64,000 nucleotides of DNA. It comes from Orbicella franksi (Eukaryota). Shown here piece by piece: positions 36,947-39,900 of the stretch. The position numbers and the translations under genes are program-made. Positions within the stretch are counted from its first letter, which is position 1. Every line of letters begins with the position of its first letter. The notes below the pieces were generated by a model. It was given only the letters and a program-made list of their open reading frames with translations. It had not been told where the DNA came from and ran no database searches. The stretch is from the NCBI GenBank assembly GCA_964199315.1, contig OZ116698.1:15624001-15688000 (forward strand), in the 5' to 3' direction.

Positions 36947-39900
36947 TCAATGTGGCTCTTCACTCCATGACCATCTGTTGGGCTCGGAGGCCTTCTCCAC
37001 ATCTGGACAATACCCGTTAACACATTCCTCCTTTAACATGAGGACAGCTTCAGCCAGCTGCATGTAATCCTCCTTAATATTGTACACTTGAGCTGATACT
37101 CGGCACCACAAGGAGGCCTGCACACTGACAAAAGTAGCAACAACTTTGTACTTGTTGTAGACATCGCTAATCATCTTATGAGCTCCTTCACATGTTGCAC
37201 CATAGGCTACAGACATTTCACTTGGGATGCGGATGACTGCCATGCATGGAGCACGTATGGAGTCTGGGATGGGAAGTACCTCTGTGTCCCAAGCTTCTGC
37301 TAGCATTGTTGAAGCCCAAGATGCAAGTTGGCTGTTGTACTTTGTTATGGCGCTCTAGTCACAACAAAAAACAAATAAGATGAACTATACTTGATTCCAA
37401 CTACAGCAGGTAAGTCTTTACAAGTCTGGTGGTATGAGACCACTAGAGGAATTTCTGATTCCTGAGTAAGGGATGCTAGCCCATTGCAGGCCACCAACTC
37501 CCCTGCACTGCAAGAATGGGTAATTGTGAAGAACAGCTCCTGTAAAACTGTCAGTAACCTGTCAGTAGCCTGTTGGTAGCTTATAAGTAACCTGTTGGTA
37601 ACCTGTCCGCCACTGAACAGTTGACTGACAGTCGGTTTGCGATCTTTTCTTCATATCATTGTCATCATAGTCCTAGCTCTCCTCTGGGTCCAATCAGGGA
37701 GAATAGGGCCATACTTACCTAATAAAGTTTGCCTAGAGAGGCAACCCAAGACTGAAACGTCTTGTCCAAGAAAGTGACACCATCAGAACGACTCAGAATG
37801 ACACCAGCAGCAAAATCACTGCAACTCTCACTACCACAAAGCTACTTAGGATGAGCAGGTTGGCCACAACAAACACTTAACATCAGGCATGATAGCATAC
37901 AACACCCAATATCTTCAACTTCTTGTCAGAAATGACCAATTCCCTCTTTTGCCACTTGGCCATCAGATAATAAACATTAATCACAACTGTCAAACTGGGT
38001 CATTAAAATCAGGGTTTGATCTCATTCGCAGTTAACTTAAATATAATAAAAAATACTAAATACATTCTAAATACATCCTATTTCCTTGCAGTGAATGGAT
38101 TTCAAAGAGTGCTCAACTCTTGGAGGAGCATTGAATATTAACTGAAACCAGTTCAGGACTTCAGGAGTGATTCATCGTTTTATCGCTACAGTCCTGTTTC
38201 GTATGGTCAAAGAGTGACCACACTCATCAGGCAACATCATGTTGCCATGATGAGTGTGGTCACTGTTTGACCATACGAAACAGGACTGTAGCAATAAAAC
38301 GATGAATCACTCCTGAAGTCCTGAACTGGTTTCAATTAATAAGATTAAATACATATATAAATAGCAACAAAGTAATCTGGACTTGTAGTACATGCATGCA
38401 AAACCTTGCATTCAGAAGTAAGCTCAAAAAATAGTTGTTGAATCTTATTAGTTTTGATTTTGCACCAACTTAATATTATCATTCTGAACTAATTGTAACA
38501 CTTTAAAATTCATTTATTACTGTCACTGAAAGATTAGAAAACAACAAAACCAAAATCATATACTACATTATTGATGAATACATAAGCCATGCACCCACCA
38601 TGCCACCAATTTCTTGATAGAACTTGAGAGCAGTTGCAGCTGAAGTGTAAGGTGTGTGATCAATAGTACCTTGCTGAAAGAACCTGTCCTGAAGGCTCTT
38701 GTCATGGCTCCATGACACAATTGATGGAACTATGATGTCATTGAATTTGGGGCTCACCCACAGTATGGCACAACCACGTGGAGCGAACAGCCATTTATGA
38801 AGATTTCCTAGTAAGTGGGCAAAAATGACTTAACATTATGAAAAAATTAATTGTGAACCGCTTGGAAATGGATTATAAACAACTTTCTTACTGAAAAGCT
38901 GGGTATTGACAAGAGAGTAACTACCCTTTATTACTGAACAGATATAAACATATTTTCATGATCAGACGATCACCAGGATGCTTGAATCAGCTTACAATGT
39001 TTGCAGGAGCACTATGTACAGGAAATTTAACAAACAAAAGTTGCTGTAATCTCACTCTTTTGCATTTGTACGGAGTGAAAAATCTATGAAACCTGTAGTT
39101 TTGGTCACTTTAGTCTGACATTTAAAGATCAAAGGATGTCATTTTATTTTACTCTTTCCAGTTGTAAGAAAATCCTTGTCTGTTGCCCTGGTTTTCTCTA
39201 CTCTAGCAATTACAAATGCATGATATAGCTTTACTTTGTTAATGAAATAATTTTAAAATTGTACATTATAGTTAATAAACTGTATCTTAATTAACTGAAC
39301 CTGCTGTTAGTGAGCTTTAATCTATAAAAAGGCAAGTCGACCACACAGCAATGTTTCAGCCCGAAAATTTTACTTGAGGGCCAAATTGGCCCCTGAAGAT
39401 CTTTTTTAGGGGCCAATTTTTTCGGAAAGGGGCCAATAAATTGAAAGCTACAGAAGGAAAAAATGCATCAGGGTACCAAGAAAAAAAACCAGCTTATTAG
39501 GATCTATGATAAAATTTAATAGTAAGTGCTTTTTGAAGTGTTTCTACTCTATAAACTTTCTTTTGAATCAGATACCAGTCTGAAGGATCGGTGTATTACA
39601 AGAGAACAATCCTTAGGCATACCTGACCTAGTCAATGATTAAGGGTTTGCAATGCATTATAGGACGTTTTTTAACACGGTCAGCCATTTGGAAGTTTTAC
39701 GATGTGAGAGAATCAACACACCAAAACAAAAGGACGGATTGGCTTCTTTTTAGTGCAGAGTGCACTATTGGGATGGTTTTGGGGGTTGCCTGCCGCTAAG
39801 GAACTAAGGCACTATGGCGCTATGGCGCTATGGCCCTATGGCGCTAATGTGTAAACTTTAATGTTTGTTTAATTAATTAATTTCAATTAATTAATTAGTC

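Follow-up and report, generated by a model that had tools for sequence, protein, structure and literature searches.

Is the hammerhead ribozyme in an intron of a stony-coral gene a device of its host, or is it the passenger of a mobile element? The question is raised by a 64,000-nt stretch of Orbicella franksi DNA (contig OZ116698.1, positions 15,624,001 to 15,688,000 of the forward strand; hereafter the window, with positions counted from its first letter), where a first-pass annotation had noticed a hammerhead inside a foldback in a gene for a pyridoxal phosphate (PLP)-dependent enzyme. We conclude with high confidence that the foldback is the old insertion scar of a Penelope-like element (PLE) of the Hydra clade in an intron of this gene, and that it consists of two extremely 5'-truncated 3' ends of the element lying head to head.

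The 206-base foldback is real, and we found its arms at 38136-38229 and 38248-38341 (94 nt each, 97% complementary). With one gap, pairing extends to 38236/38240 and leaves a 3-nt loop, TCA, at 38237-38239, which is the centre of the head-to-head junction. The arms differ by three substitutions and one indel over ~101 nt (96% identity), and none of these differences is compensated. Fifteen raw polyA reads of run X23 and contigs of runs X1 and X10, all from runs labelled coral, contain the splice joint 37354->38599 around the foldback; the joint reads CT..AC on the plus strand, that is, GT..AG on the minus strand. Hence, the foldback lies inside the last coding intron of the PLP-enzyme gene (37355-38598, 1244 nt), whose sense strand is the minus strand. 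The first-pass annotation had likewise placed it in an intron of this gene, numbered 4 there, with the minus strand as sense.

On the minus strand, positions 38236-38181 read UGUUGC CUGAUGA GUGUGGUCA-CUCUU-UGACCAUAC GAAA CAGGACUG UA GCGAUA, so that CUGAUGA, GAAA and GUA are present and helices I, II and III follow the type I order. There are 6 bp in stem I (2 of them G.U) and 9 bp in stem II (1 of them G.U), and stem III is short; GUA is the cleavage triplet, with cleavage predicted between 38187 and 38186. The plus-strand copy (38240-38296) has one extra A in its core, which reads CAUGAUGA. We found that a custom structural descriptor, which demands the core together with at least 5 bp in helix I, 4 bp in helix II and 2 bp in helix III, matches the window once, at this site, and matches none of 200 first-order Markov simulations of the window. 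Hence, the hammerhead motif is not a chance match. The Rfam search that had been proposed as a check came back empty: no hammerhead family reached its gathering score over the whole window, or E ≤ 10 in the 381-nt and 71-nt stretches searched. A copy of the PLE family with full flanks reached 15.4 bits with Hammerhead_3, whose gathering score is 48.5. The sub-threshold matches of the foldback to microRNA and small nucleolar RNA models in Rfam were to unrelated models (e.g. 39 bits versus a gathering score of 70), as is expected for any long hairpin.

Copies of the foldback arm elsewhere identify its source. BLAST of the arm against the 497-Mb stony-coral assembly gave at least 89 matches, and the hammerhead core pattern had 128 exact matches, versus none for the reversed control. 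Among the first 100 of the 128 core matches, we found 31 head-to-head neighbour pairs, at spacings of 55 to 4754 nt, and 2 tail-to-tail pairs; no neighbours lay on the same strand. The first-pass annotation had proposed a search for tandem or PLE-linked copies; the copies are PLE-linked, and none of these first 100 matches forms a tandem pair. In three long pairs (loci elsewhere in the genome are given by L numbers), the palindrome arms measure 1351 nt (L026) and 1736 nt (L027), both 100% complementary, and ~2443 nt in the full-length pair L056 (G000:C3:18783000-18790000), whose arms are 99-100% complementary with 16 nt between them.

Each arm of the long pairs has one open reading frame (ORF), which reads outward, toward the hammerhead. 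In the longer copies the hammerhead lies ~80 nt past the stop of this ORF, which encodes a reverse transcriptase (RT) and a GIY-YIG domain, and the element ends ~45 nt past the hammerhead, abutting a (TA)n microsatellite; such flanks were seen in L026, L027, L002, L004, L056 and others. The minus-oriented arm of the window (38136-38239, ~104 nt) is 91-96% identical to these PLE 3' ends, and many mini-foldbacks elsewhere in the genome likewise lie inside (TA)n tracts. By sequence comparison, the window foldback is the short extreme of a continuous series of such pairs, with ~100 nt kept per arm.

The ORF of the family, 629-707 aa long, places it among PLEs. In an alignment of 15 family members and their homologues (alignment A1), two motifs are invariant, FDVCEFYPSI (RT motif A-like) and YRDD (RT motif C). 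Also invariant are RMRWK (W40); D121 K122 T123; C567-x-C569-x5-C575, which stands just ahead of the GIY...YIG block; and, past this block, C664-xx-C667, E670, N684 and C693-x-H695. Positions 588-657, which form the GIY-YIG core, have no conserved cysteine and no CCHH. Pfam matches were weak for GIY-YIG, found near the C-terminus of the ORF in 6 of the 15 members (best E 9.8e-4, below the Pfam cut-off), and RVT_1 matched one of the 15 (9.3e-6). The closest database proteins, 90-92% identical, are from the stony coral Oculina patagonica, and homologues carry precomputed PF01541 and PF00078 annotations. Sequence and profile searches of the PDB with the PLE ORF gave nothing useful.

The Hydra clade is described by RWK, a change of DKG to DKT, CxCX5C, CxxC/CxH, the absence of CCHH, a length under 3 kb, (TA)n targets and canonical hammerheads, and its hosts are mostly cnidarian and include a stony coral (Craig et al. 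2021, PMC8557442). We found these clade motifs here in an RT and GIY-YIG ORF, together with a ~2443-nt element, (TA)n insertion and a canonical hammerhead. Hence, going by its diagnostic motifs, the family belongs to the Hydra clade. The hammerhead is of the PLE kind, as had been suggested, and the longer copies with their ORF and PLE architecture bear this out; the further suggestion that the locus marks an unrecognised PLE or retrozyme family is not upheld, the diagnostic motifs being those of a published clade.

The insertion is bigger than the foldback, since a 59-nt tail (38077-38135, minus strand) belongs to it too. The minus arm of the window runs beyond the inverted repeat into this tail, and the plus-oriented arm (38240-38345, last 4 nt uncertain) has no tail and halts at the unit boundary. 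The minus arm with its tail (query 2-170) is ~88-91% identical to tailed copies in L026, L002, L004, L008 and L015. In L056, the first ~63 nt of the other arm, its 5' start at 3393-3458, recur in reverse complement as the tail (889-954). Hence, the tail is the element's own 5' start joined after its 3' end, and the ~59 nt in the window are homologous to the first ~63 nt of the element. A candidate 9-bp target-site duplication, TAAATACAT, brackets 38077-38345 as a direct repeat at 38068-38076 and 38346-38354, the right copy being followed by ATATA; this call is uncertain because the context is AT-rich and (TA)n-like. Published PLE insertions show strong 5' truncation, adjacent inverted copies, a tail that is often at one end only and hammerheads near the 3' end (Craig et al. 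2021, PMC8557442). We found the same 5' truncation, adjacent inverted copy and one-end tail in the family pairs and in the window, and in every pair examined, the window included, the flanks are (TA)n and the tail is one-sided.

The resemblance to Hydra-clade PLEs (Craig, Yushenova, Rodriguez, Arkhipova 2021, PMC8557442) thus runs from the single ORF with its RT and C-terminal GIY-YIG domain, RWK, DKT and CxCX5C linker, through CxxC and CxH around a conserved E and N, the lack of CCHH and the ~2.44-kb length, to the (TA)n targets, the 3' canonical hammerhead, the cnidarian (stony-coral) host and the inverted 5'-truncated partner copy with a one-sided tail. The differences are that the window holds only the last ~100 nt of two copies and the tail, with no coding part; that the tail here is ~60-63 nt long and equals the element's own 5' start, versus the published 30-40 bp; and that pairs are only inverted, with no tandem pairs of the pseudo-long-terminal-repeat (pLTR) type among the first 100 core matches.

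These features fit a single retrotransposition event, in which a Hydra-clade PLE would have entered an AT-rich, (TA)n-like site in the intron. Target-primed reverse transcription in this family would usually yield two 5'-truncated copies joined head to head, probably through a template switch or a snap-back, with one copy additionally receiving a ~60-nt tail that corresponds to the start of the element's own 5' end. Truncation at this locus would have been extreme, sparing in each arm the last ~100 nt of the element, 3' hammerhead included, so that the hammerhead would be a passenger of the element and not a host device. Neutral decay would then have introduced the three substitutions and the indel, and the indel would have disabled the plus-arm ribozyme. 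The uncompensated arm differences suggest that such decay went on for a time of the order of millions of years.

We found at least six hammerhead types in related PLE families of the genome, in which the core is invariant and stems I and II change compensatorily. Stem I occurs as UGUUGC/GCAAUA, ACUGCA/UGCAGU and AAUCCC/GGGAU, and stem II as GUGUGGUCA/UGACCAUAC, GGCC/GGCC, GUGG/CCAC and GUGC/GCAC. Hence, the ribozyme is a conserved feature of the elements, and the homologous copies with covarying stems, whose absence the first-pass annotation would have counted against the motif, exist. In hammerheads of the family (L026 4834-4915, L056 5738-5822), helix I has two parts, 6 bp and, past an internal loop, an 8-bp distal stem Ib, AUUCGUUG/CGAYGAAU, a pairing that agrees with a change from G.U to G-C between subfamilies. 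Because they begin 6-8 nt too late, the window arms do not contain the 5' strand of stem Ib. Hence, the hammerhead that had been called complete has all core elements, stems I and II and GUA, and is a truncated version that lacks the distal stem of its family. The statement that only one copy is intact also holds in part: the plus-arm core does carry an extra A, private to it when compared with the subfamily, and the minus arm has two private A-to-G changes of its own, one of which turns a helix I U-A pair into U.G, so that both arms appear to have undergone ordinary mutational decay. Besides the extra A at 38247, a G at 38183 and the C/G of loop II are specific to this copy.

The RNA of 38070-38350 folds into a ~101-bp hairpin with a minimum free energy of -192.6 kcal/mol (z = -26), versus -19 kcal/mol for the ribozyme fold alone. 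Hence, the ribozyme is sequestered in the computed fold. The antisense arm is transcribed first and the ribozyme 5' end adjoins the loop, which allows the hairpin to close progressively while the ribozyme is being made; the minus-arm ribozyme (38181-38236), which keeps its core, would be locked into the hairpin during transcription. The first-pass annotation had predicted this order of transcription and this sequestration, and the latter is thermodynamically sound. PLE-type hammerheads, in which helix II is long and helix III small and palindromic, are thought to work as dimers (Cervera and de la Pena 2014, PMC4209133), and the only minimal hammerhead of this type that has been assayed in vitro, that of Schistosoma mansoni, showed no detectable cleavage as a monomer (PMC4209133). 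An inverted pair places a single sense copy on each RNA strand, so no dimer can form. The minus-arm ribozyme, being locked in the hairpin, most likely never cleaves. The window hammerhead shares with PLE-type minimal type I hammerheads (PMC4209133) the CUGAUGA...GAAA...UH core, the 9-bp helix II, the short helix III, a near-palindromic loop suited to dimers and the location in a PLE terminal repeat. It differs in that helix I of the family copies has two parts, of which the window copy lacks the distal one, and in that the second ribozyme of the inverted pair is on the opposite strand, leaving no dimer on one transcript.

Could the insertion have been put to use by the host? An exapted intronic hairpin would serve either to switch the host pre-mRNA by conditional self-cleavage or to supply Dicer/ADAR with a substrate for small RNAs against the PLE family. 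Such a role would suit the near-perfect hairpin of ~101 bp, which lies in sense orientation within a gene that is expressed. The arms are 91-96% identical to family 3' ends, so that any small interfering RNAs would have targets, and the insertion, or at least the tail and left boundary, is also present in RNA-library contigs of other samples. The arms, however, differ by three mismatches and a bulge that are uncompensated, one core is broken and the other copy lacks distal stem I, and many similar mini-foldbacks lie in (TA)n tracts elsewhere. A PLE-type hammerhead monomer is inactive in vitro, and each RNA strand here has a single sense copy and no dimer. The polyA data carry no reads or ends over the foldback and so lend exaptation no support, although at an intron depth of ~0 they say little against it either. 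We regard exaptation as quite unlikely, and a special or designed arrangement, whether a conditional cleavage switch or deliberate self-silencing, is not borne out: head-to-head is the standard insertion form (31 pairs versus 0 tandem), and self-silencing is an unavoidable by-product of that form, any inverted pair having one arm that is sense to the host gene. It is unlikely, too, that the hairpin, which splicing removes from the transcript, is diced into small RNAs that silence the PLE family in trans, as an accidental or domesticated trap locus. An animal non-LTR retrozyme was ruled out because the copies are inverted and not tandem, with no same-strand neighbours among the first 100 core matches. 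In retrozymes, direct repeats of 150-450 bp, each with a hammerhead, stand in tandem and give off unit-length or circular RNA, and in Acropora millepora type I hammerhead motifs number more than 6000 (Cervera and de la Pena 2020, PMC7229834; Li et al. 2026 preprint). What the window has in common with retrozymes is a short non-coding hammerhead sequence derived from or mobilised by PLEs, of a kind abundant in stony corals (PMC7229834; Li et al. 2026 preprint), whereas its inverted pair with one functional-looking core has nothing pointing to an RNA circle.

Two further readings concern the palindromes themselves. Perfect kilobase palindromes such as L026, L027 and L056 are a known type of artefact of chimeric long reads or assembly collapse, and de Bruijn contigs break at the foldback. 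An artefact would not yield the diverged arms of the window (96%), however, and an independent RNA library (contig of run X1) spans the foldback centre at 38207-38257 and the left boundary; the one-sided tail and (TA)n context recur in every pair, an architecture documented for PLEs (PMC8557442). We hold an assembly artefact to be very improbable. A foldback or miniature inverted-repeat (MITE-type) DNA transposon with a hammerhead-like sequence in its terminal inverted repeats is extremely improbable: inverted pairs at many spacings (0.06-4.7 kb) do superficially resemble an autonomous element with its deletion derivatives, but the interior is itself palindromic, with two outward RT/GIY-YIG ORFs and no transposase, the inner junction varies where the outer ends are fixed, and the ends are asymmetric (one-sided tail) and flanked by (TA)n and not by a defined target-site duplication.

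The insertion scar of a Hydra-clade PLE is the reading that we prefer, and several points weigh against it. The motif goes unrecognised by the hammerhead models of Rfam. The assignment to the Hydra clade comes from diagnostic motifs and not from a phylogeny with reference sequences, and the suggested neutral decay draws on just four arm differences. The probable inactivity of the ribozyme follows from a hairpin that rests on computed folding and not on an in vivo experiment. Coverage of the intron in polyA RNA-seq is almost nil, leaving the foldback uncovered, and is silent on cleavage, editing and small-RNA production.

The junctions of the family have a feature of their own. In 7 of the 31 head-to-head pairs, those with a spacing of 55-96 nt, the arms start within a few nt of where the whole hammerhead domain has its 5' base. 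Many subfamily-A and subfamily-C mini-foldbacks have inverted arms that start 0-3 nt from (A)TTCGTTG, the start of stem Ib, and in several the start is exactly there; such sites are L058 476-505, L059 477-506, L060 506-533, L063 488-516, L018 1561-1590, L006 1561-1582 and L002 1595-1624. The foldback centres of L061 and L004 have stuttered short repeats. An unrelated second PLE family (ACUGU CUGAUGA GUGC-GUAA-GCAC GAAA) also occurs as a mini-foldback in L006 (G000:C8:3764086-3767227, both strands), beside a subfamily-C foldback, and its junction lies ~6-8 nt upstream of its own hammerhead. In L056, the arm without a tail ends at the unit boundary, with the element reading ATAT beside the (TA)n target, and the shorter arm begins within the self-complementary octamer GAGCGCTC.

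The hot spot suggests that transcription starts there and gives a discrete RNA 5' end, that an exonuclease halts at the folded ribozyme, or that template switches are preferred at this point. A discrete PLE RNA species headed by the hammerhead may lie behind the mini-foldbacks that start where this domain has its 5' base; if it exists, it would make the role of PLE hammerheads testable. An Inr/TATA-like promoter at the hot spot was considered, given TCATTC or TCAGTC 8-10 nt upstream of helix I in several families, and set aside; conservation of these motifs is no proof of a promoter because in subfamilies A and C they double as the 5' strand of distal stem Ib.

The locus adds one more decayed PLE fragment to a coral genome whose richness in PLE hammerheads was known before. 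For annotation, its value is that hammerhead foldbacks in this genome are to be read as PLE insertion scars and not as host ribozyme devices. The picture of the family, with its near-always inverted pairs, a tail that is the element's own 5' start and a junction hot spot at the base of the ribozyme domain, is relevant to the integration mechanism of PLEs and to the role of their hammerheads.

Other arrangements of PLE sequence were also seen. L033 (2500-6500; G000:C11:14153000-14161000) carries a complex tandem array, with a period of 1.24-1.5 kb, in which there are subfamily-B PLE 3' ends whose cores are mutated (CUGAUGG), as well as partial inverted copies. L044 (~238-300; G000:C11:10583500-10584300) has a hammerhead-only insertion of ~60 nt, from another PLE family, directly within a (TA)n tract and, some tens of bases from it, a subfamily-A tail that stands alone in antisense. 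PLE debris is strewn through the (TA)n microsatellites of the genome.

The host gene encodes a class-V PLP-dependent enzyme. Its exon 42439-41873 (minus strand) has a class-V aminotransferase-fold domain (Pfam Aminotran_5, 8e-21), with PDB matches to class-V aminotransferase/cysteine desulfurase and to Egt2 C-S lyase (residues 63-232); PDB searches with two small host exons gave no match. The exon upstream of the insertion (38599-38808, minus strand), delimited by exon depth, contig ends and translation, encodes ...GNLHKW..., the presumed PLP-lysine region, and the last coding exon (36947-37354, minus strand), from its ORF and RNA-seq, includes the stop codon at 36947-36949. Within the left arm of the foldback, the X1 contig jumps 40 nt (window 38166-38207, with CT between), as a contig collapse at the repeat or a deletion allele in the sample. 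Just past the 3' end of the PLP-enzyme gene, at lower coordinates and on the opposite strand, lies a C-type lectin ORF (33637-34050, plus strand; Pfam Lectin_C, 2.5e-16). Farther along the window, three tRNA matches of 54-57 bits, distributed over both strands and including an identical pair, fall within 700 nt of each other at 51804-52499.

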